Position numbers and translations under genes: made by a program
Notes under the pieces: generated by a model
What the model saw: the letters and a program-made list of their open reading frames with translations, nothing else
What the model was told of the DNA's origin: nothing
The model's database searches: none
Assembly (NCBI GenBank): GCA_035221665.1
Contig: CM069154.1
Location: 5,704,001 to 5,768,000 of the forward strand
DNA: 64,000 nt
Reading direction: 5' to 3'
DNA from: Okamejei kenojei
Lineage: Eukaryota
Shown: one piece after another, positions 1,923 through 44,182 of the stretch
Layout of the letters: each line of letters begins with the position of its first letter
Numbering within the stretch: the stretch's first letter is position 1

Positions 1923-2019
1923 ATGGCGGTGGGACAGGGAGAATTCACCCACCAGAAACAGCCCAGATCCAGGCGAACGGTCACTCTGCTGGTTCTTGTC
2001 GTTGTTGTTCTCACACCAG
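1923..2019 (+). CDS. Gene A exon 1, signal peptide
   Basis: ATG at 1923 gives MAVGQGEFTHQKQPRSRRTVTLLVLVVVVLTP(G); phase-1 donor CAG|GTAAAT. Confidence 0.7.
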
Positions 2020-17000: not shown

Positions 17001-18841
17001 AATTATAAGTCAGGAAAATCCAGCAGAAAGTTTCACGGTAAGGCAATGCCACAGCATGTTGTAGCCCCAGGGAAATAAAACAACCTTACTGGAAGTCACC
17101 TCTGAAGGGTCACACATCACATGACATATCGATCACTTGACCGCTTATAACATGGCACCTAAATGAACGAGTGCCCATCCTTGGCCTTCTCCACTGCCTT
17201 GGTGAGGCCAGGCACAAACTAAAAAGCACAACATCTGGGTTCGATTCTGACCACGGGTGCTGTCTGTGTGGAGTTTGCAGGTTCTTCCTGTGACCACCTG
17301 GGTTTCGTCTGGATGCTCCGGTTTCCTCCCACATCCCAAAGACGAGCGGGTTTGTAAGTGAATTGCCCTCCATGAATTTCCCCCAATGTGTAGGGAGTGG
17401 ATGAGAAAGTGGGATAACATAGATCTAAGGTGGACAGGTGATCGATGGTCGCTGTGAGGCAGTAGGTCTACCAGCTGCGCCACTGAGCCCATCCTTTCAC
17501 TTCCTTTGTTGCCATTAATGGTCTCGACTGAGTTCACTCCTGTTGTCAGTGGGCGGCACAGTGGCGCAGCGGTAGAGCTACAGCCTCACAGCGCCAGAGA
17601 CCCGAGTTCCATCCTGACCTCGGATGTTGTCTGTGCAGTGTTTGCGCAGTCTCCCTGTGACCGCCCGGGTTTTCTCCGGGTGATCCGGTTTGCTCCCACG
17701 TTCCAAAGATGTGCAGGTTTGTAGGTTAATTGGCTTCTGTAAATTGCCCCCAGTGTGTAGGGATAACATGGAACGACTGTGAACGGGTGACTGATGGTCA
17801 GCGTGGACTTGGTGGGCCAAGGGGCCTGATTCCATTCAGCATCTCTAAACTAAACTAAACTAAGTAATTATGTTTAGGTCTGAAGAAGGGTCTCGACCCA
17901 AAATGCCACCTATTCCTTTTCTCCAGAGATGTTGCCTGACCCGCTGGTTACTCCAGCATTTTGTGTACGCTGTCCTAAAAAAGGCAGCCAGCATCATCAG
18001 AGACCCACAGCACCCTGGCCGCGCTCTCATTTCACCTCTGCCATCAGGAAGAAGGTACAGGAGCCCCAAAACTGCAATGTCCCGGTTCAGGAACAGCTTC
18101 ATCCCTACAGCCATCAGGGTGTTAAACACAACTACCTCAAATAAGGTCCAAACTACATAGTCTTGGGGGCATTAGTTTTAACTTTTATGTACTTTTACGT
18201 GTATGTGGGTATGTGTGTGTGTGTGTGTGTGTGTCTGTCTCTCTCTCTCTCTCTCTCGCACATACACATTTGGGACATATGACAATAAAGTATTCCTGAC
18301 ACTATCTTTAAGAAAGAACTGCAGATGCTGGAAAAATCGAAGGTAGACAAAAATGCTGGAGAAACTCAGCGGGTGAGGCAGCATCTATGGAGCGAAGGAA
18401 TAGGTGACGTTCCGGGTTGGAGATGTCAATGTTCAAGCTGCCCTTGCTTTCCCTCTCTCTCCATCCCTTCCCCCTTCCCAGTTCTCCCACTGGTCTTACT
18501 GTCTCCGAGTACATTTTATCTCTGTACCGCCCACTCCCCTGACATCAGTCCGAAGGGTCTCGACCAGAAACGTCACCTATTCCTTCGCTCCATAGATGCT
18601 GCCTCACCCGCTGGGTTTCTCCAGCATTTTCGTCTACCTTCTGACACTATCTTTAAGTAATTATGTTTCTCACTTGACTCCAAAGGAAACCCCTGTCATT
18701 TATACCACCGTGACAAACCGTTCTCCAGCTAGCACGGAGAATACTTACATGAACCTTCAGGATCTGAACACACAAGGACAAGCCAAGAGGCAAGGTGCCG
18801 CAGAAGTTGTGTACGCAACAATTCTCACTGATAATAATTAA
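1923..18841 (+). CDS. Gene A: CD300/PIGR-like (MDIR-like) inhibitory receptor; exons 1923-2019, 4987-5315, 9610-9766, 10374-10489, 16985-17037, 18686-18841
   Basis: Six GT-AG exons encode leader, IgV, Ser/Thr stalk, TM and a tail with VIYTTV, TYMNL and VVYATI. Phases are compatible except within the IgV exon, which carries several 1-bp indels. Confidence 0.8.
4987..5315 (+). pseudogene. Gene A IgV exon with multiple frameshifts (true lesion or consensus error)
   Basis: After CAACAG| the pieces GSRGITGP / EEVRGELRQSVTVECQYGQE / FSDYKKLW / QGRTSMTDIKTQRILSVTI / NLEKSDEG / IYWCAID appear in changing frames; donor GAAG|GTACG. Confidence 0.8.
5922..8905 (-). mobile_element. CR1/HER1-type LINE ORF2 (endonuclease and RT), frameshifted
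   Basis: ITETWL, VGVVYRPPN, MGDFN and VRPHLEYCVQFWSP motifs; (GAAACATA)n 3' tail at 5922. Confidence 0.95.
9610..9766 (+). CDS. Gene A mucin-like Ser/Thr-rich stalk exon
   Basis: GSQTSRPDMVTSTSTTMSTRASTTTTLTTLTLDAPTTKEASSIEASGSTSPN(R); pyrimidine-rich acceptor, phase 1 to 2. Confidence 0.8.
9828..10120 (-). mobile_element. HE1-type tRNA-derived V-SINE (representative of dozens of copies and fragments in the window)
   Basis: A box TGGCGCAGTGG, B box GGTTTGATCC, conserved core and AACT-type repeat tail. Confidence 0.85.
10374..10489 (+). CDS. Gene A transmembrane exon
   Basis: EADTFPWQFVLAIALTIVFLLLIAAIILCVKIRQKKKT(G); TTGCAG| acceptor and |GTAAGT donor, phase 2 to 1. Confidence 0.9.
13370..16025 (+). 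mobile_element. CR1/HER1-type LINE, degenerate, with an anomalous internal segment
   Basis: EPTRGQAILDWVL and WRVANGTPLFKKG motifs, RT core, and the shared 3' UTR and tail. Confidence 0.93.
16985..17037 (+). CDS. Gene A cytoplasmic exon 1
   Basis: (G)SNGKRIISQENPAESFT; TTTTTCAG| and |GTAAGG, phase 1 to 0. Confidence 0.75.
17551..17862 (+). mobile_element. HE1-type V-SINE
   Basis: GGGCGGCACAGTGGCGCAGCGG head and (AAACT)n tail. Confidence 0.88.
18212..18258. repeat. (TG)n(TC)n compound microsatellite
   Basis: Visible directly in the sequence. Confidence 0.95.
18686..18841 (+). CDS. Gene A terminal cytoplasmic exon with ITIM-type motifs
   Basis: ETPVIYTTVTNRSPASTENTYMNLQDLNTQGQAKRQGAAEVVYATILTDNN*; phase 0. 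Confidence 0.85.
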   Translation, partial: ETPVIYTTVTNRSPASTENTYMNLQDLNTQGQAKRQGAAEVVYATILTDNN

Positions 18842-24574: not shown

Positions 24575-27043
24575 CATTCTCGAGTGGTCCCCGTAACCTT
24601 TGATTCTCTTACCCTGAGTCAATCATGCTTACAATCTTCGCAATGTAAAGTTCTGCGATTGGAGCTCACGTCCCTGGTCACACTATGCTTGACACTTTCC
24701 CAGCACCGCTGACATGCTGTAAATGATTGCATTCATTGCACAATCTCCATTTTTACTCATACCAATAACAAATTGCTCAAAACTGCAAACCAGAACTGTC
24801 CCATTGAAATTCAAGGCACAGTACTCTCCTTATTACTGAAAGGCCACTCAGCTGACCGGCATTTCTAAGTTTGGTTTAGTTTAGAGGAACAGTGACGGTG
24901 GAGGCCGGTTTTCTGGATACTTTCAAGAGAGAGCGAGATAGGGCTCTTAAAGATGGCGGAGTCAGGGGGTATGGGGAGAAGGCAGGAACAGGGTACTGAT
25001 TGGGGATGATCAGCCATGATCACATTGAATGGCGGTGCTGGCTCGAAGGGCCGAATGGCCTAATCCTGTACCTATTGTCTATTGTCTATTGAAACAATCC
25101 CTTCGGCCCACCAAGTCTGCGGCGACCAGCGATCCCCACACACTAACACCATCCTGGGACAATTTACAATTATACCAAGCCCGTTAGCCTACAAACTTGC
25201 ACATCTTTGGAGTGTGGGAGGAAACTGAAGATACCGAAGAAAACCCACGCAGGTTACGGGGAGGACGGACAAACTCCATATAGACAAGCACCCGTAGTTA
25301 GGATCGAACCCGCGTCTCTGGTGCTGTCGGGCAGCAACTCTACCACTGTACCCCAAAATATTATGATACCTTATGATATTCCAAGTCTGTCTACATTGAG
25401 ATACAAGAAGACCTTCATACCTGGTCTACTCCATCCATGGAGGTCAAGATCACATTGACTCTCATCTTCCTAGTTGTAGGATTTGACCATCGTGGAGCAT
25501 GTCTCCGCAGCATCAGAGAGGTTATCATGGTAATAAATTAGAATCATAGACTCATAGTTATATAGCGCAGAAATAGACCCTTCACTCATCCATGCTGACC
25601 AAAATGCCCCACCTGAGTGGTCCCATTTGGCCGTATTTGATCCGTATCCCTCTGAACCATTCCTATCCATGTACCTGTCCAATTGACTTTTAAATGTTGT
25701 TATAGTAGGTGCCTTAGCTACCTCCTTTGACAGCTCGTTCCATATACCCACCACATTCTGAGTGAAAAGCTTGCACCTCAGGTTCCTATTAAATCCCTCC
25801 CCCCTCAATTTAAACTTGTCTGGATTTTGATTCCCCTTTTACTCTGGGTAAAAGACTCTGTGAACTCCCCCTATCAATTCCTCCTCATGATTGTATACAC
25901 CTCTATAAGGTCACCCCTCAGCCTCCTGTGCTCCAAGGAATAAAGTCCTAGATTATCCAAATTTAGTTTAGTTCATCATTTAGTTTATCACATGGACCAA
26001 GGCACAATGAAACACTTTTTTCTTGCATGCCATCCAGTCAGCAAAAGGACAATACGTGATTACAATCAAGCCACCCACAGTGTACAGATACAGGATAAAG
26101 GGAAATACTGTAGGTTTAGTGCAAGTTAAAGTCCAGTAAAGTCCAATTAAAGATGGTGCAAGGGTCTCCAATGAGGTAGATGGTAGGTCAGGATCACTCT
26201 CTAGTTAGTAATAAGAAGGTTCCGTTTCATGATAACATGAAGGCAGGAAGAAACTCCGTGAATCTGCAGGTGTGCGTTTTCAAACTTCTGTACCTCTTGC
26301 CTGATGAGAGAGGGGAGAAGAGGGAGTGGCCAGGGTGAGACTCGTCCTCCTTGTAGCTCAGACTTTCGAGTCCTGGCAAAATCCTGATAAATCTTCTTAG
26401 CACTCTTCCCAGCCATGAAGGAATCATTTCAACTGTTTAGGAAGGAACTGCAGATGCCGGTTTAAATCGAAGGTAGACACAAAAAGCCGGAGTAACTCAG
26501 CGGGTCAGACAGCATCTCTGGAGACAACCCCATACTCTAGGACTATCCGACACACTAGGGACAATCTACAACTTAGCGAAGCCAGATAACCTACAAATCC
26601 ACACGTCTTTGGATGGTGCGAGGAAACCGAACACCCGGAGAAAATCACGCGGTCATGGGGAGAACGTACAAACCCCGTACAGACAGCACCCATAGTCACA
26701 ATTAAACCCAGGTCTCTGGCGCTGTAAGTTCAGCAAGTTGTGAAACAGGATGTTTGTCAATATTCCTTATTCTAGATTGGATTGCAAAGTATTAATTTTA
26801 AAAGTGCATCACCAAACACTGATCTAAAAGTGCATGATCTTTAAGGAGGACAGGATTGGAATATGTGGATACCCTCACTGGAAACCTGCTTCAGTTCAGC
26901 TTGTCTTCTGCCCAAACCTCTGCCAACCACAGTTAATCCCCCAAAGTGGAACCGTTGGCAATGAGCACGCAACAGATGGCAAAATAGGATATGGGTCAAT
27001 GTTGCTTACTCTAAGTCACATTGCAAAGCATTTGTTCATTCGT

Positions 27044-27051
27044 GAGGAAGT
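27044..27051 (+). promoter_or_regulatory. Candidate PU.1/ETS site in the gene B promoter (second copy at 40124-40131)
   Basis: GAGGAAGT about 110 bp upstream of the ATG, retained in the duplicated promoter; motif match only. Confidence 0.35.
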
Positions 27052-27157
27052 TTGCACATGGAACAAGTGATTAAATCAAACAAGAGTAAGTCGTGAACAG
27101 AGCAAATTGGAGACCGCTTCATCGGCAAACAAGGACCTCTCTCCCTCTGGAGCCACG

Positions 27158-27194
27158 ATGTTTTACATTCTGCTGTTTCTGACTGTGACTTCAA
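27158..27194 (+). CDS. Gene B signal-peptide exon
   Basis: GCCACGATG Kozak-like start; MFYILLFLTVTS; donor |GTAAGT, phase 1. Confidence 0.85.
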
Positions 27195-30100
27195 GTAAGT
27201 TTTTTCACTTAAAGCTAAGATGGACTGATTCTAGATTAGTATGGGTGCCAGCCGATGGGCCGAACAGCCTAATTCTGCCCCATTAACTTATGGTCATGGA
27301 ACCATAGCGCAGTTATATGTTAACACGAAGATTAGCTCTTGTTGTTTAAATAAGTGATGATACACTGCTGTTCAGCCAAAGGACCAGGAGCCTAGAAAGG
27401 AACAAAATAACTTTACATTTTAGCAAGAGTCAAAATGAACTGTGACAAGAGCATGGGATTTAACAGAGGATATAAGAGACTTTCGGACTGGCACATGCAT
27501 GTAAGAGAAAAAAGATACAAAGTGCTGGAGTAACGCAGCGGGTCAGGCAGCATCTCTAGAGAACATGGATAGGTGATATTTTGGGCCAGACCCCTTCTTC
27601 AGACTAATTGTGGTGGGGGGAGAGGGGTGGGGAGAATGCCCCACCACCTCAATCAGTTTTTAAGACTCGTTGGCAGGGGCAGATAAGGGTTGGTCGTGGC
27701 ATCATGTTCAGCATAGCGATTGTGGGCCAAATGGCCTGTTCCTGTGCTGCACTGTTCTAGATTTTAGTGAAGATGCAGCACAGAAGATTTTTACGGTACA
27801 ATCTTTCCTCGGATGCTGTCTTTGTGGAGTTTCTCCCCGTCACCGTATGGGTTTCTTCCGGATGATCCAGTTTCCTCAGCTTATTCTGAGGCTGTGCCAG
27901 AGTGCACAGCCTCAGAATAACAGGACGTTTAGTTTAGTTTGGAGATACAGCATGGAAACAGGCCCTTCGACCCACCGAGTCCACGTTGACCAGCGATCCC
28001 CGCACATTAGTTCTATCTTAAACACTGGGAACGATTTTTACCGAAGCCAATTAACCAACAAACCTGCACGTCTTTGGAGTGTGGGAGGAAACCGGAGAAC
28101 CCGGAGAAAACCTATGCAGGTCACAGAGAGAACGTACAAATACCGTACAGACTGCACACGTACGCGGGTCTCTGGCGCTGTAAGGCAGCATCTCTACCCC
28201 TGCGCTACTGTCCTGTACCTGTACCTGTTACAAAGGACATACCTGTACAAAGGAGTTGTGGATTCATTTCTTTAGTCAGAGGGTGGTGAATCTGTAGAAT
28301 TAGTTGCTACAGATTGTTGTGGCGGCTAAGTCATTGGGTGTTTTTAAGGCGGAGATTCTCCGATTCTTGGTGAGTAGTACGGGTATCAGGGGTTATGGGG
28401 AGAAGGCAGGAGAATTGGGTTGAGAGGGAGAGATAGATCAGCCATTATCGAATGGTGGGCCAGACGATGAACCGAATGGCCTAAATGTTCTCCTATAACT
28501 TTTGAACATGAGATTATGTCCGGGGGGGGAGGGAGGGGTGGTTATGGGAATATTTTGATGTGATTCTGTAAAATTTCCAGCATTAAATTTCACCCAACAG
28601 GTTCCCTAGCACAGCTTCACCTGATGGTGATAAGAGCTGGAGAGGGAGAAACAGTGACTATAGAATGTCCAAACGCTCAGAAAACAGGACCTGTCAGCTG
28701 GTGCAAAGCCTATTCTCGAAATGAGTGTCAAATAATAGTCAACACTGAGCAAGACGAGAACCGTAGTGGAAGGATATCAATGAGAAGACTCAATGGGTCT
28801 GTTTTTGTAACAAGTCAACTTCACAAGAATGATGCAGGAACATACTGGTGTGGAACAATTCAGACAAATGGAATCCGTGTTTCAGATATTGTCATGCTGG
28901 ATGTATTCACAGGTAAGAGGTTTTCCGAAGATTTTAAGACTGATAATATGCTTCACTGATAATATACACTTGGACTGCTGTGCCATAATGAGCATACTGA
29001 TTGTTATGGAGAGGTGCTGCCCGACCTGCTGAGTTGCTCCAGCACTTTCTACGCAAGATTCCAGCATCTGCAGTTCCTTGTGTCTACCGATTGTTAAGCG
29101 AGTTTAAGTTACAAAGGTGTGTTGGAAGGATGATGGTGTGCACCGAAGATAGACACAAACAGCTGGAGAGGCGGGATAGGCAGCTTCCCGGGAGAAATAG
29201 AATACGAGACATTTTGGGTCAATAGACAATAGACAATAGGTGCAGGCCATTCGGCCCTTCTAGCCAGCACCGCCATTCAATGTGATCATGGCTGATGATC
29301 CCCAATCAGTACCCCGCTCCAGCCTTCTCCCCATAGCCCCTGATTCCGCTTCCTTCAAGAGCCGTATCTAGCTCTCTCTTGAAAGTATCCAGAGAACCGG
29401 CCTCCCCCAACATTGTGAACATGTTTCCTGCCTCTAGCGTGTCCAAGCCCTTAATAAACCTATATGTTTCAATAAGATAGCCTCTCATCCTAAATTCCAG
29501 ACTATACAAGCCCAGTCGCTCCGGGTCAGGGCAATTCCTCAGACTGAAAGTAGGGAGGTGGGGAAGAGCGGTGGAACTGGGGTGGAAGGGGGCAAGGCGG
29601 GAGGGGAGTGTAGTGTTAGTAGAAATTACTTAAAATTAGAGAATTCAACATTCATACTGCCGGGTTGTAAGCGAACCAAGCAAAATATGAAGTGCTGTTC
29701 CTCCAATTTGCGCATGGCCTCACTCTGATAGTGGAGGAAGCCCAGGACAGAAAGGTCAATGTGGGAATGGGAAGGGGAGTTGAAATGGTTGACAAGCGGG
29801 AGATCCTGTAGGCCTTGGTGGACCGAGCGCAAATGTGCGTCGAAACGGTCACCGAGTCTACGTTCGGTCTCACCTCGTTATCTCTCCATCTTCAGCGGCA
29901 CTCCTCCTGCCTGTCGCTTCGCAATGCGTTCGACGATATGTCGCGCATGCTTGCTGGCGGGGTCTTCACGTAGTCACTCACGTGACTCCGAAGTAAAATT
30001 GGCTTCAGTAAAATTATAACTCATCCCTTGTGTGTGTAGGAAAGTGTTAATGTGCGGGGATCGCTGGTCGGTGCAGACTCGGTGGGCTGTATCTTTAAAC

Positions 30101-33100
30101 TAAACTAAGGTTTGTGGATCCTTGGCTCTTCCCGACTAAAGTCAACAGTCAGCATCTCTGATATCTCATACCCTCATTTTGTTTCCATTACAGCAGATTC
30201 ACGGATACTAAACCGTACCACAGTCAAGGGCGTAATGGGCAATGCCACCACTATACATTGCCGGTACAAGGTGCAATTTAAAGCATATGTGAATTTCTTG
30301 TGTAAAGTTGTCTCTGTGAATAGTTGCCGCATCATAGCGACACCTCAACACTACAACAGCAGCAAATTATCAATCAGTGAGAGCAAATTCAACAACTTTG
30401 CTATCACGATCAGGAACACTGATGAAGGAGATGTGGGGGAATATTGGTGTGGGGCCAGGACACCAGTCGACTTTGAGATCTCACAAGTTAAAACCGTGAT
30501 GTTTAAAGGTATCAATCAACATAAAATTTCTGTGACTCAACATTTACGTAGATATTCAGCATGCAAACAGTCTTTACTGATATTATATTCCATGTATCTC
30601 TCTCCATTCTCGTAAGTTGTTGGAGTAGAATTAGGCCATTCGGCCCATCAAGTCTACTCCGCCATTCAATCATGGCCGATCTCTCTTTCCCTCTCAACCC
30701 CATTCTCCTGCCTTCTCCCCATAACCCCTTACACACGTACAAATCAAGAATGTATCAATCTCTGCCTTAAAAATATCCATTGACTTGGCCTGCACAGCCG
30801 CCTAATTCTTCTCATCTCCCCCAACCTCGTATCTTCAAAGCTTTCCCTAAACCGTGTCCTGATATTCGCCTGAGTTTTACCTTCTTACTAATCTCTGATT
30901 GTGGGATTTATCACTAAATATTTCACTCATGTTTATTACTCTTAGACAGACTTTCTGAACCTCTTTTTAATATACATATTAATTGAATTGAAAGAGGCAA
31001 CAGGGAAGCAGGCTCTTCAGCCCATCTAGTCCATGCCAACCATCCATCATCCATTCACACTAGATTTATGTTATCCCATTTTTGCATCTACTCCTTACAG
31101 ACTGAAGGGCAATTTGCAGCATCTGCAGTTCTTTAAGTTATGTTGTGTTGTAATTGATATGAATTGGTATAATATGTTTATTTTAACAACCTACCTCAGG
31201 AACGATAACAAAACCAGAGGTACCAAGCAACAAAGCAAGGTAAGATTTCTGCAGTCATCCTCAATCTAATAATTATTTACTGATTGTTGTTGGTATTGGT
31301 TCAATACGTCATGTTTAGTTTAGTTTAGTTTAGAGATAGAACGCCGAGACAGGTCCTTCGACCCACCGAATCCACACTAACCAGCGATCCCCGCACACTA
31401 CAGTATCCTACAGATACCAGGGACAATTTACATTTATACCAAGCCAAGACATTTATGCACCTCTTTGGAGTGTGGGAGGAAACTGAAGATCACGGGGAGA
31501 ACGCACAAACTCCGTACAGACCGCTCGCGTGGTCAGGATTGATCCCGGATCTCTGGCGCTGCGCCATTGTGCCACACCGTCTCTTATTCTAAACCAGCAT
31601 CTGCAGTTCCTTGCATCTTGCTTCCAGTTTCATCCACATTCTAGTTTGTCAACATAAAGAACTGCAGAAGTTGGTTAATACATGAAAGGGATACAAAGTG
31701 CTGGAGTAACTCAACGCGTCAGGCAGCATCACTGGAGAATATGGATGGGTGACATTTCAGGTCAAAACACTTCTTCAGATTCACGTTTCGGGTCGACACC
31801 CTTCTTTGATCCGAAGAATGGTCCCAACCTGAAACATCACCTGTTCCCATTCTCCAGGGATGCTGCCCGACCTGCTGAGCCACTCCAGCACTTTGTGTCC
31901 TTCCTCATTCTAGTTCAATTTAGTGTTGGAGATATTTTTCCTTGTCTCATTGAATGTTTCTCAATCATGTTTTAATAGCGGCACCCCACAGATATGGCAC
32001 ATTATACTTCCACTTTTGTTGGGACTATTGATTGTAATCCCGATAGTTCTAATTGTAAAGAAGAGGAAACAGTCAGAAACTATCCCTCAAAAAAGTAAGT
32101 AGCCAACAAAATATTTCTTCTGCAGTTAAAATGATAATAGAACAGTAACTGCGTATGGATTTATTATTGTCGTACAGTGAAAAAACGTTGTTTTGCATGC
32201 CACCCAGTCAAATCCTACTGGGCACCAGTATGTGTAGAAAGGAACTGCAGATGCTGGTTTAAACCGAAGAAAGGCTCAAAAAGCTGGAGTAACTCAACGG
32301 GACAGGCAGCATCTCTGGAGAGAAGGATGGGTGATGTTCTGAGTCAGATGTTTCAACCCATCTGAAAAGGTCTTGATCCAAAACATCATCCATTCCTTCT
32401 CTCCAGAGATGCTGCCTGTCCCACTGAGTTACTCCAGCATTTTGTGCCTATCTTCTGTACACGAGTACATCAGGTTATGCATGAAAGAATATGGTGTTAC
32501 AGCGTCAGGGAAAATGCCAATAAAAATGTTGAAGGACTGCAAAGAGGCATAAATTGCAATAAACGTCCGTAAATTATCCCTAATTTGAGGATTAGTTTAG
32601 ATTAGGGATACAGCGTGGAAACAGGGCCTTCGGCCCACTGGGTCTGCACCAACAAGTGATCCACTTACACTGGCACTATCCTACACACAATAGACAATAG
32701 ACAATAGGGGCAGGAGTAGGCCATTTGGCCCTTCGAGCCAGCACCACCATTCAATGTGATCATGGCTGCTCATCCCCAATCAGTACCCCATTCCTGCCTT
32801 CTCCCCATATCCCCTGACTGCTATTTTTAAGAGTCCTATCTAGCTCTCTCTTGAAAGCATCCAGAGCACCTGCCTCCACCGCCCTCGGAGGCAGAGAATT
32901 CCACAGACTCACCACTCTCTGTGAGAAAATGTGTTTCCTCGCCTTCCTTCTAAATGGCTTACTCATTCTTAAACTGTGGCCACTGGTTCTGGACTCCCCC
33001 AACATCGGGAACATGTTTCCTGCCTCTAGCGTGTCCAAGCCCTTAACAATCTTATCTGTTTCAATGAGGTATCCTCTCATCCTTCTAAACTCCAGAGTAT

Positions 33101-36100
33101 ACAAGCCCAGCTGCTCCATTCTCTCAGCATATGACAGTCGCATCATCCCGGGAATTAACCTTGTAAACCTACGCTGCACCCCCTCAATAGCAAGACTGTC
33201 CTTCCACAAATTTGGGGACCAAAACTGCACACAATACTCCAGGTGTGGTCTCACTAGGGCTCTGTACAACTGCAGAAGGACCTCTTTGCTCCTATATTTG
33301 ATTCTTCATGTTATAAAGGCCAACATGCCATTCGCTTTCTTCACTGCCTGCTGTACCTGCATGCTTACTTTCATTGACTGATGTACAAGGACCCCCAAAT
33401 CCCGTTGTACTTCTCCTTTTCCCAACTTTACACCATTTAGATAGTAACCTGCCTTCTGTTTTTGCTACCAAAGTGGACAACCTCACATTTATCCGCATTA
33501 AACTTCATCTGCCATGCACCTGTCCCATCCCCCAACCTGTCCGTCACCCTGCATTCTCATAGCATCCTCCTCACTGTTCACACTGCCACCCAGCTTTGTG
33601 TCATCTGCAAATTTGCAAATGTTACTTTGAATACTTAATCCAAATCATTGATGTATATTGTAAACACCTGCTGTTTTTGTTCCACTGACATCCCTGCTAG
33701 TGTATCTTTCCAGTCACCTTTGGCCAGCTCCTCCCTCATGGCCCCATAGTCCCCCTTTTTCAACTGCAACACTGACACCTCTGATCTACTCTTCTCCCTC
33801 TCCAAGTCCACACACTAGGGTATATCGGGAGAAGGCAGGAACGGGGTACTGATTGGGGATGATTAGCCATGACCACATTAAATGGCGGTGCTGGCTCGAA
33901 CGGCCGAATGGCCTACTCCTGCACCTATTGTCCAATGTCTATTGTCTATTGATACAAACAGTGAAACTCAGCAGGACGACAGTGAAACTCGTGCGATGAC
34001 CAGATTGGGGGAGAGACGTGCCTTTCAATAATTTATTCTATGTACCTTTTCATATCTCTCGTTTCCATCTCCCCTGACTCTCAGTCTGAAGAGTCAGGTT
34101 TCAGTGGTGGGTCTTGAACCCACAACCACGAGCGTCTCCTCAGTGTATGACAGTGAAAAGGAAGTGGTACTCGGTTGCTAAGACCGGAAAGTAACATGTG
34201 GTTGCAGCTTCTGGTAAAGTGCTTGGTTGGTTTGTGGGAGGGGGGAGGGGGGAGCATGAGTGGGGAAGAGAGTGGGGAACTGAGATGTGTGCTGCGGTTG
34301 ACACCTCATCACAAGCGGAACAAACCTGCTTCCAACCACCTCCATCAAGACGTCTACCATCTCCGTGTTCCCCAGAGCTACAGTATTTATTTTTAAGAGA
34401 AACAGTGTGCAAACAGGGCCCTGGCCCACCGTGTCCACACCGACCAACACTCACCCATACACTAGTTCTATTCTACACATTCGGGACAATTTACAGAAGC
34501 CAATTCACTGACAAACCTGCACGACTTTGTAACGTGGGAGGAATAGATACAGCATGGAAACAGGCCCTTGGGCCCATTGAATCCGCGCCAACCGGCCCTC
34601 ACCCCGGTACACGAGCACAACCCTACACACCAGGGACAATTTACAATATTACAGGAGCCAATTAACCTACAAACGTGTACATCTTTGGAGTGTGGGTGGA
34701 AACCGGAGCACCCGTAGAAAATCCACATGGTTACAGGGAGAAGGTACAAACTCCACAGAGACACCACCCGTAGTCAGGATGGAACTCGGGCTTCTGGCAC
34801 TGTGAGGCAGCAACTCTACCATAGCGTTATGGCCAGCACTGCGGGGCAACATTTAAAGGAGACGGGCGGGGCAAGTGCGGGGAGAGTCGGAGACTCCTGG
34901 AATGTGCTGCCAGGGGTGGTGGTGGAGGCTGATACGATAGCGGCATTTACGAAGCTTTTAGACAGGCACATGGATATGCAGGGAATGGAGGGATGTGGGT
35001 CACTTGAAGGCAGAGGGGGTTAGTTTAACCTGGCACCATGTCGGGTGTAGACAATGTGGGCCGAAGGGCCCGTTTCCTGTACTGTACTGTTCAATGTTTT
35101 CTGCTACTCGGGGAAATATGAGAACTATTGTTATTCTAAATTACATGCTGTTACCTTCTTTGCAGATGATTGCAAAAACTCAGAAACTCCCACCACAGCC
35201 AAGGTAAGAATGTAGAGCTGTATGAAACCACTCTGTATTATTTGTCTTTTCAAATTCCTAACAAGATACATCTCTTCTTTACACATGTTGATCAGTAGAG
35301 GCTGATTTACAGAACAAGAACAAGAGTGCTGGAGTAGCTCAACCGGTCAGGCAGCATTTCTGGACAACATGGATAGGTGACATTTCAGGTCGGGACCTTT
35401 GAGTCTGAAGCAGGGTCCTGACTGATTCATATTCTCCAGAGATGCTGCCTGACCCGCTGAGTTAATCCAGCACTTTGTGTCCTTTCCTTCAACAAATTAC
35501 AACGCAATACTGCCCTTTGATTCGGTTTCTCTCTCCACGTTTGCTGCCTGACCTGTTGAGCTTTTCCTGCAGTTAGTTTATTTGTTCAAAGACACACCGC
35601 GGAAACAGGTCCTTCGGCCCACCGAGCCCGTGCTGACCACGAATTCCCGCACATTAACACGGCCCTACACACACCAGGGACAATTTTATATTTATACCAA
35701 ACCAATTAACATACAAACCTGTACGTCTTTGGAGTGTGGGAGGAAACTGAAGATCTCAGAGAAAACCCACGCAGCTCACCGGGAGAACCTACAAACTCCG
35801 TACAGACAGCACCCGTAGTCGAGATTGAACCTGGGTCTCTGGCGCTGTGAGGCAGCAACTCTACCGCTGCGCCACCCTTATTCTCAGATTTCCACAGTAT
35901 TTTCTTTTGGCCTTAAATATCTAACTGAATTTTTTTGTTTCAGTCTGAAGGAGAAACTGAAGATACGATTGCATATTCAACCGTGACCATTCAGTCGTCA
36001 GCTCAGACCGAAGCAAGCCCTGCAATTTATTCCAATCTTAAGGATCTAAAAGAACAAAATGAAGACGTCAAGATCCATTCGTCAGAATCAGTGGAATATT

Positions 36101-36123
36101 CTGCTCTGGTGTTCCATTCTTAG
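27158..36123 (+). CDS. Gene B: intact two-IgV CD300/PIGR-like (MDIR-like) inhibitory receptor, ~345 aa; exons 27158-27194, 28601-28912, 30194(30197)-30508, 31200-31239, 31979-32094, 35166-35203, 35944-36123
   Basis: Seven GT-AG exons with intron phases 1,1,1,2,1,0 join into one open frame: leader, two 4-Cys IgV domains, short stalk, uncharged TM, and a tail with IAYSTV, IYSNL and VEYSAL. Confidence 0.92.
28601..28912 (+). CDS. Gene B IgV domain 1
   Basis: AGEGETVTIEC...SWCKAYSRNECQIIV...GRISM...NDAGTYWCG; has the extra C-C' cysteine pair typical of CD300/PIGR/TREM domains. Confidence 0.93.
29620..29875 (-). mobile_element. Penelope-like element, C-terminal GIY-YIG region fragment
   Basis: HLRSV...VNHFNSPSHSHIDLSVLG...RKLEEQHFIF...QPGSMNVEF, a typical PLE ORF end. 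Confidence 0.75.
29880..29998 (-). mobile_element. Isolated left terminus of a DIRS1-like element
   Basis: Reverse complement begins TTTTACTTCGGAGTCACGTGAGTGACTACGTGAAGA, the same as the DIRS start at 54865. Confidence 0.8.
30194..30508 (+). CDS. Gene B IgV domain 2
   Basis: GVMGNATTIHCRY...FLCKVVSVNSCRII...DEGDVGEYWCG; CAGCAG tandem acceptor; phase 1 to 1. Confidence 0.92.
31200..31239 (+). CDS. Gene B short stalk exon
   Basis: (G)TITKPEVPSNKA; CTCAG| and |GTAAGA, phase 1 to 2. Confidence 0.78.
31979..32094 (+). CDS. Gene B transmembrane exon
   Basis: GTPQIWHIILPLLLGLLIVIPIVLIVKKRKQSETIPQK; |GTAAGT donor, phase 2 to 1. Confidence 0.9.
32688..33790 (-). mobile_element. CR1 LINE 3' portion
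   Basis: YRALVRPHLEYCVQFWSP ORF; (CAATAGA)n tail. Confidence 0.9.
35166..35203 (+). CDS. Gene B cytoplasmic exon 1
   Basis: (N)DCKNSETPTTAK; TTTGCAG| and |GTAAGA, phase 1 to 0. Confidence 0.8.
35944..36123 (+). CDS. Gene B terminal exon with two ITIMs
   Basis: SEGETEDTIAYSTVTIQSSAQTEASPAIYSNLKDLKEQNEDVKIHSSESVEYSALVFHS*. Confidence 0.9.
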   Translation, partial: SEGETEDTIAYSTVTIQSSAQTEASPAIYSNLKDLKEQNEDVKIHSSESVEYSALVFHS

Positions 36124-37534
36124 TGTAATTGCTCCAGCTTCCATAAACATCCCAAGTTAACGCCATTCTCGTAAACATGTACATTTGTAAAATGGAAACA
36201 GGCCCTTTGACCCATCGAGTCCACGTCAGCCACCGATCACCCATTCACATTTCAACATAGTTCTTAAGAAATTACTTACAAGCAAAAATAAGTCTGTCCA
36301 AGATCTTGAGATCACTGAAGTTTGCCTGGATTATAATCTTTGCTTGGCTTTCTAGTTTTAGATATAGTGTGGAAACAGGTCCTTCAGCCCACCAAATCCA
36401 CACCGAGCATGGATCATCTTTGGACACTTGTTCTATGCTACACACTCGGGACAATTTTTACACAGAGACCAAACCCGCACGTCTTTGGAGTGTGGGACGG
36501 AAACCCGAGCACCCGGAGAAAAAACCCACATGAAACCAATTGCCTCATGGATAACTCACTTCCAGCTTTAAATCTCAGGCATAATTTTGGCAAACGAGAG
36601 TATTTACCAAAACAGAAAGTGTTTTTTACTATATTACAGTATACAGCGATATAACTCATGGCTCTAAAATGCTGGAGAAAAGAAGATACAAAGAAAATAA
36701 TGACGACTGTTGTGTGTGACGTAGGGAGAACATGCAAACTCCGATCAGACAGTACCCACCATCAGAACCGAACCCGGTTGATTGAATGGCGGAGTAGACT
36801 TGATGGGCCGAATGGTCTAATTCTTCTCCGAGAACTTATGAACTATTCTACTTGAGGGGAAAATGAGGAAGGAAACAAAGTTTTTCCCCACTGTATCTCA
36901 GTACACGTGATCATAAACCAAGACATCTCCACTACGCTTGACTCATACACACTATTGCAGCACTCCTGGTCTACAGGAAAGGCTTAGAAATAATCCTTCC
37001 TCGTGTTTCTCTCATGCAAGAATGGCAGCCAAGCACACACTTGGTCATCCCTATTTGTCACGTGGTCTGACACCATAATATAATATCAGGAGCAGCAGGA
37101 AGGAATCAAAGTTCAATCACATGACTAAACAAGACAGATTTCCACAATGATCAAAGCGATCTCTGCAATACAAAAGGTTGTAATTAAGAGGTATGGAGAG
37201 GCTACAAATGTTGTGTCCATCCAGCCTGACGATAATCCATCAAGCAGACAAAACAGAGTGCTCACGTCTCAAGAGTGCGAGAATCCTAGAGAACAGAAAC
37301 AGGCCTTTCAACCCAACTTGCCCATGATGCCCCATCGAAGCGAGTCCAATTTGCCTGTGTTTGGTCCATTTCCCTCTAAACCTGCCCTGTCCATGTACCT
37401 GTCCAAGTGTCTTTTAAATTATGTTTTAGTAACTGCCTCAACTACCTCCTCTGGCAACTCGTTCGATGTAACCCACTTGAGTGAAAAAGTTGCCACTCTG
37501 GTACCATTTAAACGTTTCACCTCTCACTTTAAAC

Positions 37535-37916
37535 CAGGGGTTCCCAACCTTTTTCGTCCCGTTTACCCCTGGCAACTTTCTTCTTCTTGCATATGGCGCG
37601 CACATCCTAAAGATGTAGGACAACTTGTTCTATTTGGTCTTATTTGATTGTACACGCTAGTTGATTGCATTGGTTGAAACAGGGCGGGCCACGTGAAGGT
37701 TGCAATCTCCCACCCTGCCTGGCAACTTTAATAGCACAGACCACAGTTATTTCACTTATTTATGAAGAACTAATGATGAACAGATACCGGTATACCAGAA
37801 GCAAACACAGTTAGGCAATGAGAATAAGTTTGACAAGAATAACAATGAGAATAAATCTAGAATCAACAAATTTAACCCCTGGGTAGGCGAAATGTACCCC
37901 AGGTTGGGAACCCTTG
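37535..37916. mobile_element. hAT-type MITE with a nested short retroposon (37580-37717)
   Basis: TIRs CAGGGGTTCCCAACCT / AGGTTGGGAACCCTTG; imperfect 8-bp TSD CTTTAAAC/CCTTGAAC; inner insert flanked by a duplicated CCTGGCAACTTT. Confidence 0.75.
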
Positions 37917-39149
37917 CCTTGAACCCATGCCCGCTGGATCTTGATTCCTCTACTCGGAGCAAAAGACTCCGTGTATTCATCCCATTAATTCCGCTCATGT
38001 TTTTAAATACCTCCATAAAATCACCCCTTAACCACCTGTGTGTTTAATTGTCATATGTACCAGCAAAGCAACAAATAAATTGTTCGAGAACTCTTAGAAA
38101 AAAAGACTATTGTGGTTAATGTGCTAATTTTTTTTTTCCAACTTTCCTTTTTACCAGACCTTCATCGAAGGTTAACCAACCTCCTTTCATCCATCATTTC
38201 CAATTAACCATCTGAGTTCTCTGCTCTTCTGCTATTAATGTTCACTCTGATTCTACAGAATAGGTGCAGGTGTCAGAGGTTATGGAGAGAAGGCAGGAGA
38301 ATGGGGTTAGGAAGGAGAGATAGATCATCCATGATTGAATGGCGGAGTAGACTTGATGGGCCTAAAGGCCTAATTCTACTCCTTGCACTTATGACCTTAT
38401 GAATATTTTTTTAAATTGACGTGTCATTTGGTTTGGAATTTGCGGAACTTTTGAAGTTCCTGAAAAATGAACTTCCCAAAACATTTTTGAGAAGTCCCAA
38501 AAAAATGGTCTTTAATTTGATTTGAAGAAATTGGTTGATGGACCACAGCGTCACCAAGTTCCCCATCAAGTCACACATCCTGACTTGAATGATAAATGAG
38601 TGGTGGAGTCCGATACAGTTACAGGAAACACCTTGTTTCTACAGAACTCTTTATAGAAACATTGAAAATAGGTGGAGTAGGCCATTTGGCCCTTCGATCC
38701 AGCACCACCATTCAATATGATCATGGCTGATCATCCAGAATCAGTTCCCGTTCCTGCTTTCTCCCCATATCCCTTGATTCTGTTAGCCCTAAGAATATCT
38801 AACTCTCTCTTGAATACATCTAATGAATTGGCCTCCACTGCCTTCTGTGGCAGAGAATTCCACAGATTCACAACTCACTGGGTGAAACAGTCTTTCCCCA
38901 TCTCAGTCCTAAATGGTCTACCTCTTATTCTTAAACTGTGACCCCCGGTTCTGGACTCCCCCAACACGGGGAAACATTTTTCCTGTATCTAGCCTGTTCA
39001 ATCCCTTAGGAATTTTATGTGTTTCTATGAGATCCCCTCTCTTTATATCGCACCGATTATAGCGGAGAGACTGACCGAACTTCACTGCCAGGCCGGGCTG
39101 CCGACGCCACCCCGTGCCACTTCCTCGCCCTTGGACCTTCGCTTAGTTT

Positions 39150-39443
39150 TTAGGTTAGTTTAGAGGTACAGCACGGAAACAGGCCCTTTGGCCCACCGAG
39201 TCCGCACCGACCAGCGATCCCCGCACACTAACACTATCCTACACACACATTATTCATGATTTACATTTTTCCCCAGCCAATTAGCCAACAAACTTGTACG
39301 TCTTAGGAGTGTGGGAGGAAACCGAAGCGGGTCACGGGGAGAAGGTGTAAACTCCGTACAGACAGCACCCCGTAGTCAGGATCGAACCCGGGTCTCTGGC
39401 GCTGTAGCTGTAAGGCAGCGACTCTACCGCTGCGCCACCGTGC
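39150..39443 (-). mobile_element. HE1-type V-SINE
   Basis: Full head-to-tail match to the other copies. Confidence 0.85.
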
Positions 39444-39904
39444 TTTAATGTTTCAGCTGAAAAAAGGAGCCTCTGTCAGTGCAATCCCTGCTCAGCCTAA
39501 ATGTTATTGTTGGGTCTCTACACATGAAACGCCACATAGCACACTCTGTTGTAGCAGACAATCAGCTATAACGGACACAACTCTCCCCGTTACAACAAAG
39601 GTTTACTGTATTATGTTTAGACCCTTAAGTATGCAAAGCACTGACGGAAATGGACCTACTGCAGGCAAACTAGATCAGAGTACAAGGTTTCGCTTGGAGG
39701 TGACAGATCGAAGGGCCCCATTTCAGAGTTGTGCAAGTTGTTTCATGTGTGGCGTCTAGCAGAGATGGGGAAACATTATCCATGCAGTTGGCACAGTGAC
39801 TGGCATAAGCCAGTTAATCCCACACCAAGATAAATCAGAGGGAAAGCAAAGGTGAGCTTGTTATTGTTATTTGGGACAGGGCTCTTAAATATCATTGAGG
39901 ACTT

Positions 39905-40716
39905 TCTTTAAGGAGGACAGGATTGGGATATGACCACGCAAGCTGTGGATACCCTCACTGGAAACCTGCTTCAGTTCAGCTTGTCTTCTGCCCAAACCTC
40001 TGCCAACCACAGTTAATCCCCCAAAGTGGAACTGTTGACAATGTGCACGCAACAGATGGCAAAACAGGATATGGGTCAATGTTGCTTACTCAATGTCACA
40101 TTGCAAAGCATTTGTTCATTCGTGAGGAAGTTTGCACACGGAACAAGTGGTTAAATCAAAGAAGAGTAAGTTGTGAACAGCGCGAATTGGAGACCGCTTC
40201 ATCGGCAAACAAGGACCTCTCTCTCTCTGGAGCCACGATGTTTTACATTCTGCTGTTTCTGACTGTGACTTCAAGTAAGTTTTTCCACTTAAAGCAAAGA
40301 TGGACAGATTCTTGATTAGCACGGGTGCCAGGAGTTATGAGGAGAAGGCAGGAGAATGGGGTCAATGGAAAGTTAGATCAGCCATGATTGAATGGCGGAA
40401 TAGACATGATGGGCCGAACAACCTATTTCTGCCCCATTAACTTATGAACTTATGGTCATGGAACCATAGCGCAGTTATATGTTAACGTGAAGATTAGGTC
40501 TTGTTATTTAAATCAGTGATGATACACTGCTGTTTAGCCAAAGGACCAGGAGCCTAGAAAGGAACCAATTAACTTTACATTTTAGCAAGAGTTAAAATGA
40601 ACTGTGACAAGAGCATGGGATTTAGCAGAGGATTTAAGAGACTTTCGGACTGGCACATGCATGTAAGAGAAAAAAGATATAAAGTGCTGGAGTAACTCAG
40701 CGGGTCAGGCAGCATC
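39905..40716 (+). repeat. Direct duplicate of the gene B promoter, leader exon and start of intron 1 (26838-27554)
   Basis: Near-identical colinear sequence offset by about 13.08 kb; similarity ends inside a Penelope-derived repeat. Confidence 0.95.
40238..40274 (+). CDS. Unit C leader exon, identical to the gene B leader
   Basis: ATG...MFYILLFLTVTS|GTAAGT; no Ig exon seen downstream. Confidence 0.65.
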
Positions 40717-41387
40717 CTGTTGTCGGTAAAATCAGTCCCAGTACTTTGAGAAGGCGTGGCTGATCACATTGCAGTCCATTGATAAATACTCCTTGGCCCT
40801 GACTAAAGTCCCTCTGTCCTTAGTACATCCAGTTTCCCTACCATTGTGAATGTCTGCCCTTATTTGCCAAAAACAAATAACTTCACACTAATCACGGTTC
40901 AATACCTGCTGGCATTGCTCTGCCCAACATACCAGTTGCTTCTCATCCCTCTGTGGTCTATGATTATCGTACTATCCAAAATGATACAATTTTGGTGTAA
41001 TCTGTAAACTCGTTAATCATACTTCCAACATTAACATCTAAGGCCTGCAGATGGGACTAGTGTAGATCAGGGCATCTTGGTCGGCGTGGGGAAATTGGGT
41101 CAAAGGACATGTTTTCGTGCTGTATGTCAGACCACCAACATGAACATCTAAGTTGTTAAGGTGTCAGCGGGTGCAGCAGCATCTAATAGGCGACGTTTCG
41201 GGTCGAGACACCATGGAACACCTCCAAGGAATGGGTGCATGTTGCGATATAAACATCTCACCAATGTCTACGCCACAACCTTGGATCACACTGAATGATT
41301 CCGTGTGCAATATGATGAAAATAAATTGTCCAGCGTTGACCTTTGATGACTCTGTGTGGAAGTAATAATATTTCCGTGGATTTCCAG

Positions 41388-41495
41388 GGACATCGTGCTG
41401 AATGTTTGCCGTGTTTGGGGTGTGTTACGCTGGGTAATCTTTGGAGTTCTGCTTCTCTTCCTGGTTTCCATCAGCTGTGTGACAACTTTTAAAAG
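41388..41495 (+). CDS. Unit C activating-type TM exon with Arg in the membrane segment
   Basis: TTTCCAG| DIVLNVCRVWGVLRWVIFGVLLLFLVSISCVTTFK |GTAAAA; phase 2 to 2, open frame. Confidence 0.75.
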
Positions 41496-41593
41496 GTAAA
41501 AGTTTGCAATCTCTTCACTCTGGTGTACACATTCAATTCAATTGGAAATGATGGGAATTTACTTTAGAATTGTAGAGATAAAATGTGGACATA

Positions 41594-43443
41594 CAGTGCC
41601 CTCCATAATGTTTGGAACAAAGACCCTTCATTTATTTATTTGCCTCTGTATTCCACAATTTGAGATTTGCAATAGAAAAAATCACGTGTGGTTTAGTGCA
41701 CATTGTCAGATTTTATTAAAGGGTATTTTTATACATTTTGTTTACACCATGTAGAAATTATAGCTGTGTTTATACATAGTCCCCCCTTTTCAGACACCAT
41801 AATGTTTGGGACACATAGCTTCACATTGTAATTGCTCAGGTGTGCTTAATGCAGGTATAAGAAAGCTCTCACCACCTAGTCTTTCCTCCAGTCTTTCCAT
41901 CACCTTTGGAAACTTTCATTGCTGTTCATCAACATGAGGACCAAATTCGTGCCGATGAAAGTCCAAGAAGCCAATATGAGACTGAGAAACAAGAATACAA
42001 CTGTTAGAGACTTCAGACAAACTTTAAGCTTGCCAAAATCAACTGTTTGGAACATCATTAACATCCAATCACCGAGCTCTATCCTCAGTCCCACCCCCTC
42101 CTACTCCTCCCTCCTCCAATTATCGAGCTGAATCATCATGTCCCGCCCCCATTGCCTGATGACCGACGTATCTCTCGTCCAATCGGCGCCCTCGATCAGC
42201 AGTCCCACCCCCAGTCTCGCGGAAAGCAGAGATTGCACCGGGTTTTAAAATCCGGATTACAAAAACTGGGGGGGATCGTCCCCCACTTCTCAAACCAGAG
42301 TGGGACGTGTCACCCTGCTGGTGAGCTTACTAATAGCAAACGGACTAGCAAGCCAAGGAAGACCACAGCTGATAACAGAGGAATTCTCTCTATAAAGAGA
42401 AAAATCTCAAACACCTAGTCCGACAGATCAGAAAGTCAGGTGTGGATTTGTCAATGACCACTGTCTGCATAAGACTTCATTAACAGAAATACAGAGGCTA
42501 CACTGCAAGATGCCAACCACTGGTTAGCCACTAAAATAGGATGTCCGGGTTACAGTTTGCCAAGAAGTACTTAAAAGGGCAACCACAGTTCTGGAAAAAG
42601 ATCTTGTGATCAGATGAGACGAAGATTAACATATCAGAGTAATGGAAAGAGCAAAGTATGGAGAAGAGAAGGAACTGCCCAAGATCCAAAGCATACCACC
42701 TCATCTGTGAAACACGGTGGTGGGGGTGTTGTGGCCTGGGCATGTACGGCTGCTGAAGGTACTGACTCACTTATCTTCATTGATGATACAACTGCTGGTG
42801 GTGGTAGCATAATGAATTCTGAAGTGTATAGACACATCCTATCTGCTCAAGTTCAAACAAATGCCTCAAAACTCATAGGCCGGCAGTTCATTCTACAGCA
42901 AGACAATGATTCCAAACATATTGCAAAAGCAACAAAGGAATTTTTCAAAGCTACAAAATGGTCAATTCTTGAGTGGCCAAGTCATTCTGAACCCAATTGA
43001 GCATGCCGTTTACATGCTGAAGAGAAAACTGAAGGTGACTCGCCCCCAAAACAAGCATAAGCTAAAGATGGCTGCAGTACAGGCCTGGCAGGGCATCACC
43101 AGAGAAGACACCCAGCAACTGGTGATGTCCACGAATCGCAGACTTCAAGCATTCATTGCATGCAAAGGATATGCAACAAAATACTAAACATGACTACTTT
43201 CATTTACATGACATTGCTGTGTCCCAAACATTATGGTGCCCTGAAATGGGGGGACAATGTACAAACACTGCTGCCATTTCTACATGGTGAAACCAAAATG
43301 TATAAAAATGGCCTTTATTAAAATCTAACAATGTGCACTTTAACCACATGTGTTTTCTTTCTATTACAATGCTCAAATTGTGGAATACAGAGACAAATAA
43401 AATAAATGATGGGTCTTTGTCCCAAACATTATGGAGGGCACTG
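41594..43443 (+). mobile_element. Tc1-like DNA transposon, degenerate, IR/DR type
   Basis: TA-CAGTGCCCTCCATAATGTTTGG termini, about 220-bp TIRs with internal direct repeats; KHGGG, QQDNDSKH and NPIE transposase motifs with frameshifts. Confidence 0.95.
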
Positions 43444-44133
43444 TAGGTCCTACATCCAACCAAGTCCGCGCCACGAGGGACAATTTACGATTATACAGAG
43501 GCCAATTAACCCACAAAACTACACGTCTTTGGTTTGTGGGAGGGAACCAGAGCACCCGGATAAAACCCAGGCTGTCACAGGCAGAACATGCAAACTCCAT
43601 ACAGACAGCACCCGTAGTCATGATCAAACCCGGGTCTCTGGCGCTGTAAGGCAGCAACTCTACCGCTGCGCCACTGTGCCGCCCTGGGTCATTTCCTCGG
43701 GTAAAATTTGATGGTAGAGATTATAAACTGCGTTGTAATTGTTATTCAAGGAAAAAAACAGCCGAGACCTTGGAGATGGGGTCGGCAGTGGTGGAGGGAG
43801 GAGAGGAACAGCGCCGGTGAGCTGGCTGGGTGGGGCTTCACCTCGCATGGAGATGGCCGTGGGAGGCGAGGGGAAAAGGATGCGTTGGTGGGTCGAGGTG
43901 TGGGGGGAGTGCGAGTGGGCTGCTGGAGGCCCTGCAGCAGCCGGTGGATCGGGTGCCGCTGGAGGTGCAAAGAGGTCGGGGACGAGCCCGCAGATCCGAC
44001 ACGGCCTGCAGCGGCATGGGGCAGCGGTGGAGGCACCGACAACATCGCCAGGCCAGGCCGAACCCTGCAACTCCAGCTTGTGCCGTACCCATGACAACAA
44101 GCCTTTAAGCATACGAGGAATTTCATTGTCCAG

Positions 44134-44182
44134 GTCAGTCATACCAATAAAAAGCATCAGATCACCCAAAAACACATTTTAA
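44134..44182 (+). CDS. Unit C candidate short tyrosine-free terminal exon
   Basis: TTTCATTGTCCAG| phase 2 gives (R)SVIPIKSIRSPKNTF*; AATAAA at 44314-44319. Confidence 0.45.

Follow-up and report, generated by a model that had tools for sequence, protein, structure and literature searches.

A two-exon cassette in the genome of the skate Okamejei kenojei, which encodes an arginine-bearing transmembrane (Arg-TM) segment and a short cytoplasmic tail, is best read, at a probability of roughly 55%, as a birth-and-death relic of an activating MDIR/CD300-like paralogue. It lies downstream of an inhibitory receptor gene, here called gene B, in a window of 64,000 nt (contig CM069154.1, forward-strand positions 5,704,001 to 5,768,000) that is part of a skate MDIR/CD300/pIgR-like paired-receptor cluster. 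A first-pass annotation had proposed that the cassette serves gene B as an alternative, activating 3′ end, with the caveat that it may be a deletion relic. The testable evidence leans towards that caveat without deciding between the two, because the cassette is orthologous to part of a separate activating gene, a truncated duplicate of the gene B 5′ end lies upstream of it, and RNA depth drops ahead of it, with no enrichment of the Arg-TM exon over intron.

The arginine of the orphan exon at 41388-41495 sits six residues into the hydrophobic stretch, and the 23-residue tail contains no tyrosine motif. Activating members of the family are characterised by a positive charge in the TM and by a short tail. 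To place the cassette, 196 family proteins were collected by a full HMMER search with the first V-domain exon of gene B (IgV1), word searches and cluster look-ups. Searches used single exons or database proteins, and gene models were joined in local scripts solely for frame checks. The Arg-TM module with its W...LRW motif occurs in 17 of the 196 proteins, from chimaera to rays and in the coelacanth. The related Arg-TM exons of other rays and sharks each stand behind immunoglobulin (Ig) domains in their protein models.

The closest match is the little skate (Leucoraja erinacea) protein XP_055510911.1 (P0035, 468 aa), which shares 30 of 35 residues with the orphan exon. Its C-terminus also matches an exon at 43751-43820, and the stop falls in the same place. 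The first-pass annotation had put the tail further downstream, at 44134-44182 (+), but this is just an open frame behind an AG without any relative, whereas 43751-43820 is conserved, and the former was rejected. A nearby homology of 44026-44110 to positions 6-91 of the window was also set aside, being a GC-rich repeat that ends before 44134-44182. By sequence comparison, then, the two exons of the cassette are orthologues of the final two of a distinct activating gene in the little skate. That gene has three V domains of its own, of a different subtype (type A), and a serine/threonine (S/T)-rich stalk, neither of which adjoins the cassette in the window. The leader, Ig and stalk parts of XP_055510911.1 map solely to a second gene of the window, gene A (region 1923-9766), away from the cassette. 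Since the TM and tail match this protein and the rest maps to gene A, the cassette is taken to be the 3′ part of an activating type-A paralogue, the 5′ exons of which are missing.

That the Arg-TM exon has no Ig exons of its own, as had been stated earlier, is borne out: pattern scans and tblastn with four family proteins gave no Ig-like open reading frame (ORF) or match between 36.1 and 41.4 kb, and no stalk exon or stalk remnant in the same interval. A private stalk exon (phase 1 in, phase 2 out) was also sought in 32.1-41.4 kb with nothing convincing; the best candidate, at 37199-37274, lies inside the continuously covered 3′ untranslated region (3′UTR) of gene B and was rejected. The nearby leader cannot splice in frame either, as previously claimed, with the leader copy at 40238-40274 (phase 1) running into a stop four codons after joining 41388. 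The fragment therefore yields no receptor of its own. With Ig and stalk exons missing, a frameshift from leader to TM and no in-frame product from its own start, the cassette has the anatomy of a gene fragment.

The leader copy belongs to a duplicate of the gene B promoter, leader and early intron 1, which lies ~1.5 kb upstream of the Arg-TM exon and covers the first 360 bases of gene B intron 1. Identity to gene B is 306/333 in the part upstream of the leader, 37/37 in the leader, which is identical to 27158-27194, and 51/57 and 286/309 in the two intron parts. The duplicate carries a later repeat insertion at ~40331-40408, beyond which 40408-40716 is colinear with gene B intron 1. Homology to gene B breaks off at 40716, within a piece of a highly abundant transposon, and the 670 bases from there to the Arg-TM exon have no homology to the stalk-TM introns of gene A or gene B. 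This short transposon (starting ..AAAGTGCTGGAGTAAC..CAGCGGGTCAGGCAGCATC) occurs at 40675-40716, at 41163-41250 and in many other places; its contigs exceed a depth of 100,000 in all four sequencing runs compared, and it marks the breakpoint of the duplicate. The TM-tail intron of the cassette holds a further element, Tc1/mariner-like, with inverted ends of 233-238 bp that are 88% identical; without it, the intron would be only ~380 bp.

Gene B is an intact, expressed inhibitory receptor gene of seven exons, with two V domains, an uncharged TM and two immunoreceptor tyrosine-based inhibitory motifs (ITIMs). The exons give a 350-residue open frame, colinear with the 354-residue Amblyraja radiata protein XP_032898784.1 (P0159), to which they are 76-93% identical exon by exon. 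The best library match of the IgV1 exon is L. erinacea XP_055510919.1 (P0001), which is 88% identical to P0159. Gene B encodes the CD300/pIgR-type V-set with an extra cysteine pair that defines the family, and the motif WCKAYSRNEC is present. Its top relatives are annotated as pIgR-like or CMRF35-like, as is the family in general, which was found in skates, rays, sharks, chimaera and coelacanth. Tail ITIMs, which mark the inhibitory members, are present in gene B (IAYSTV and VEYSAL) and in gene A (VIYTTV and VVYATI).

Expression was assessed over 35900-41600 with assembled contigs of four sequencing runs (X1-X4) under one species label. Run X2 behaves as RNA, as a contig of depth 661 is spliced into the last-exon acceptor of gene B. 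The overhang of this contig maps to 35172-35201, by which the small cytoplasmic exon was recognised. The 3′UTR contigs of X2 stop at 38136, just past the AATAAA at 38074. An earlier remark that no AATAAA occurs between the gene B stop and 37850 was accurate, with neither AATAAA nor ATTAAA found in 33877-37850. This has an ordinary explanation, as the 3′UTR extends to 38136 and the distal hexamers are used. Past ~38.1 kb the depth falls more than 10-fold, from 480-870 to 4-54, with low coverage continuing unbroken over 38.3-41.6 kb: 16 at 38.3-38.7 kb, 23-26 at 39.1-39.3 kb and 54 over 39414-40276. This low coverage could be read-through, pre-mRNA or DNA. Runs X1, X3 and X4 contain just sparse, unspliced contigs of 2-4% divergence and repeats, and are uninformative on expression.

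Over the cassette itself, X2 provides a 682-long contig of depth 19 that starts at 40689 and apparently runs unspliced into the Arg-TM exon to ~41409, its listed piece being 40689-41159 and the remaining extent reconstructed from its length and variant offsets. A shorter contig (41407-41496) gives a depth of 11.8 over the exon, falling to ~4 past it by arithmetic on the last bin. The exon is therefore no deeper than the intron preceding it. X2 has two variants inside the Arg-TM exon, both non-synonymous (V20D and V26A), the former of which puts an aspartate into the TM. The contig of depth 54 stops at the donor of the leader copy, and a spliced leader copy was considered. However, its last 140 bases have the gene-B-type base at all seven differing positions (7/7, 40139-40224), so it is read as an assembly chimera with the abundant 5′ exon of gene B, and the candidate was rejected. 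In run X1, an unspliced 295-base contig (41305-41599) spans the Arg-TM exon with 11 mismatches (3.7%); it stems from a highly divergent allele or else from a second, paralogous cassette at another genomic site.

Table 1. Features of the cassette, its surroundings, gene B and gene A (positions are those of the window).
Feature	Position	Strand	Remarks
Orphan Arg-TM exon, DIVLNVCRVWGVLRWVIFGVLLLFLVSISCVTTFK	41388-41495	+	AG acceptor, GT donor; phase 2 in, phase 2 out
Conserved cassette tail exon, (R)KKTAETLEMGSAVVEGGEEQRR then stop	43751-43820	+	good acceptor; 20/23 identical to the C-terminus of L. erinacea XP_055510911.1
Truncated 92% duplicate of gene B promoter, leader and early intron 1	39905-40716	+	equals 26838-27554
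Tc1/mariner-like DNA transposon, TM-tail intron	41583-43455	.	inverted ends 41583-41815 and 43218-43455; transposase-like ORFs at ~42.6-43.2 kb
Gene B leader exon, MFYILLFLTVTS	27158-27194	+	phase 1 out; matches N-terminus of A. radiata XP_032898784.1
Gene B IgV1 exon, CD300/pIgR-type V-set	28601-28912	+	Pfam V-set E=5.4e-10; 76% identical to P0159
Gene B IgV2 exon	30194-30508	+	Pfam V-set E=4.9e-5, score of 23.9 bits below the curated cutoff of 26; 86% identical to P0159
Gene B stalk exon, GTITKPEVPSNKA	31200-31239	+	donor phase 2
Gene B uncharged TM exon	31979-32094	+	phase 1 out
Gene B small cytoplasmic exon, NDCKNSETPTTAK	35166-35203	+	matches P0159; loose end of spliced X2 contig maps there
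Gene B last exon, ITIMs IAYSTV and VEYSAL	35944-36123	+	stop 36121-36123; 93% identical to P0159; X2 contig spliced at acceptor
Gene B 3′UTR (RNA contigs)	36124-38136	+	X2 depth 480-870; poly(A) hexamers at 37850 and 38074
Gene A leader	from 1923	+	intact
Gene A sole Ig exon in window	about 4986-5300	+	at least 3 frame changes needed; contains stops
Gene A S/T-rich stalk exon	9610-9766	+	intact; donor phase 2, in frame with 41388
Gene A neutral TM exon	10374-10489	+	intact
Gene A ITIM exon	18686-18841	+	intact

Behind the observed anatomy, orthology and duplication, and the observed expression and 3′ end of gene B, the most likely history would be a rearrangement during birth-and-death turnover of the cluster. 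An activating paralogue, the orthologue of XP_055510911.1, would have lost its leader, Ig and stalk exons in the skate genome. Duplication and deletion, in whatever exact event, may then have placed the truncated copy of the gene B promoter, leader and intron 1 upstream of the remaining TM exon. What is left would be transcribed at background or read-through level only, and is presumably not used. Gene fragments arise by duplication and deletion in birth-and-death clusters of the KIR/LILR/CD300 type. The cassette resembles these as a partial gene, formed by duplication and deletion among repeats, that stands beside intact paired receptors. It differs from them in that its exons are free of disabling mutations and fit the reading frame at the stalk donor of a neighbour.

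These differences are among several points that weigh against a relic. Both cassette exons, three splice sites and the conserved stop are intact. The sole intact ectodomain upstream is that of gene B, which has an in-frame stalk donor, the Ig exon of gene A being broken. The cassette is covered by RNA-like contigs, and the short X2 exon contig ends at 41496, no more than one base from the donor, where depth goes from ~12 to ~4. The 41495 donor may be used by some molecules, although the contigs cannot prove that. If it is not used, the frame stops at once (..TTFKR then stop), and Hemitrygon akajei XP_072886348.1 ends likewise. Finally, RefSeq isoforms of what appears to be one gene in the stingray Hypanus sabinus model a single ectodomain with both tail types.

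The same points bear on the proposal that gene B switches between two ends. Here, some gene B transcripts would pass the poly(A) sites at ~38.1 kb and splice 31239>41388 and 41495>43751, a course of events that is possible but unlikely. The product, no less tentative, would be a 293-residue isoform carrying the two V domains of gene B on the Arg-TM and short tail, with predicted pairing to adaptors bearing immunoreceptor tyrosine-based activation motifs (ITAMs), such as FcR-gamma or DAP12. The phase argument behind this proposal is sound: from the gene B stalk donor at 31239 (phase 2), the frame continues into 41388 (..SNKA-R-DIVLNV..) as well as into 31979, as a gene with one ectodomain and two tails requires, and the joined 31239>41388>43751 model ends at the conserved stop. 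The intact exons and splice sites, the low but continuous X2 coverage and the contig end at the donor are also in its favour, and one transcript model of Rhinoraja longicauda (P0174) combines a neutral TM with an Arg-TM exon. The H. sabinus X1 (XP_059806113.1) and X3/X4 (XP_059806115.1 and XP_059806117.1) models are the closest parallel. They present one gene-B-type two-V ectodomain, with the first 227 residues identical, and diverge from the stalk onward into a neutral TM with ITIM tail versus an Arg-TM tail, the two-tail design proposed for gene B, albeit in computed models. Their names and consecutive accession numbers suggest that they belong to one gene. However, the H. sabinus activating cassette has its own stalk exon and none was found in the window. 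The depth drop after 38.1 kb, the lack of enrichment over the upstream intron and the reconstructed contig that crosses the acceptor unspliced also argue against use by gene B. In the little skate the orthologous exon is attached to another ectodomain, and a word search brought up no isoform of A. radiata or L. erinacea that combines a B-type ectodomain with an Arg-TM.

Attachment to a type-A ectodomain raises an alternative in which a type-A gene has the cassette as its distal 3′ end, and its stalk donor (9766, or that of a gene upstream of the window) would splice over gene B into 41388. Models of little skate and Rhinoraja do join a type-A S/T stalk to an orphan-type TM exon, 9766>41388>43751 is in frame, and the orphan exon is nearer to type-A-linked than to type-B-linked Arg-TM exons. 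Nonetheless, this is quite improbable, as it requires a 31.6-kb intron that holds all of gene B, and the sole Ig exon of gene A in the window is frameshifted. In its stalk, gene A is also nearer to P0176, an inhibitory protein of the little skate, than to P0035 (~77% versus 69%, by a by-eye residue count). An assembly artefact, in which collapse at the repeats of 40.3-41.2 kb would have removed Ig and stalk exons from a complete activating gene, is even harder to credit. The homology break does fall in a very abundant transposon, but the window contains no N runs and 40408-40716 is colinear with gene B intron 1. The X2 contig piece 40689-41159 is colinear as well, with the remaining 211 letters apparently reaching ~41409 with a putative ~39-nt deletion, although its 28 bases left of 40716 are below the 31 asked for a bridge. 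A relic of an activating paralogue remains the favoured reading, with a small share of the probability assigned to none of the four.

The window as a whole is repeat-rich and CpG-depleted, and its coding parts find their best matches in skate proteins. Gene A (1923-18841, +) is a type-A inhibitory MDIR/CD300-like gene, of the three-V-domain family, and corresponds to P0176, an inhibitory protein of the little skate, and to Rhinoraja P0175. With its Ig exon broken by frameshifts and stops, it resembles a pseudogene, or else a gene deprived of its ectodomain.

Models from other batoids show further mixtures. Among the H. sabinus proteins P0160, P0164, P0009, P0161 and P0153, one gene is given two alternative Ig exon sets (X1 vs. 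X2) and two alternative tails (X1/X2 vs. X3/X4), which suggests that either a tandem array has been merged or the cassette-type splicing is real. From X3/X4, a second H. sabinus gene (XP_059806639/640) departs only in the latter half of IgV1. R. longicauda P0174, Mobula hypostoma P0132 and H. sabinus P0180 contain an Arg-TM together with a neutral TM or ITIM tail in one chain, and probably result from read-through or from the merging of neighbouring activating and inhibitory units. Such mixed models show the annotation of the cluster to be unreliable across batoids.

The receptor family itself is already known. For the clearnose skate, MDIRs are described as relatives of CD300, TREM and pIgR that come in multigene families with both activating and inhibitory members (PMC3031540). 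Gene B shares the CD300/pIgR-type V-sets of this family, whose members bear either ITIMs or a charged TM. The activating module of the window is unlike them in being Ig-less and alone, behind a truncated copy of the promoter and leader of its neighbour. For a single gene that swaps an ITIM tail for a charged TM, a literature search yielded no more than looser parallels, horse CEACAM splicing (PMC5856374) among them. It is doubtful that an Ig-less Arg-TM and tail cassette behind an ITIM gene works as an alternative 3′ end in batoid MDIR/CD300-like clusters. If it did, the choice of poly(A) site and splice site would make one ectodomain either inhibitory or activating, and the X1 and X3/X4 models of Hypanus would provide another case.

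The activating and inhibitory partners of a receptor pair normally have a gene each, and how such pairs arise and vanish is a question of long standing. As a relic, the cassette would offer a clean snapshot of birth-and-death turnover in a cartilaginous-fish cluster, with an activating gene cut down to its signalling end and a copy of the neighbouring promoter a short way upstream of what remains. If gene B does use the cassette, one gene would encode both members of a pair, which would change the annotation of such clusters and the view of how their signalling is balanced. The stingray RefSeq isoforms make this two-tail idea testable with existing RNA data.

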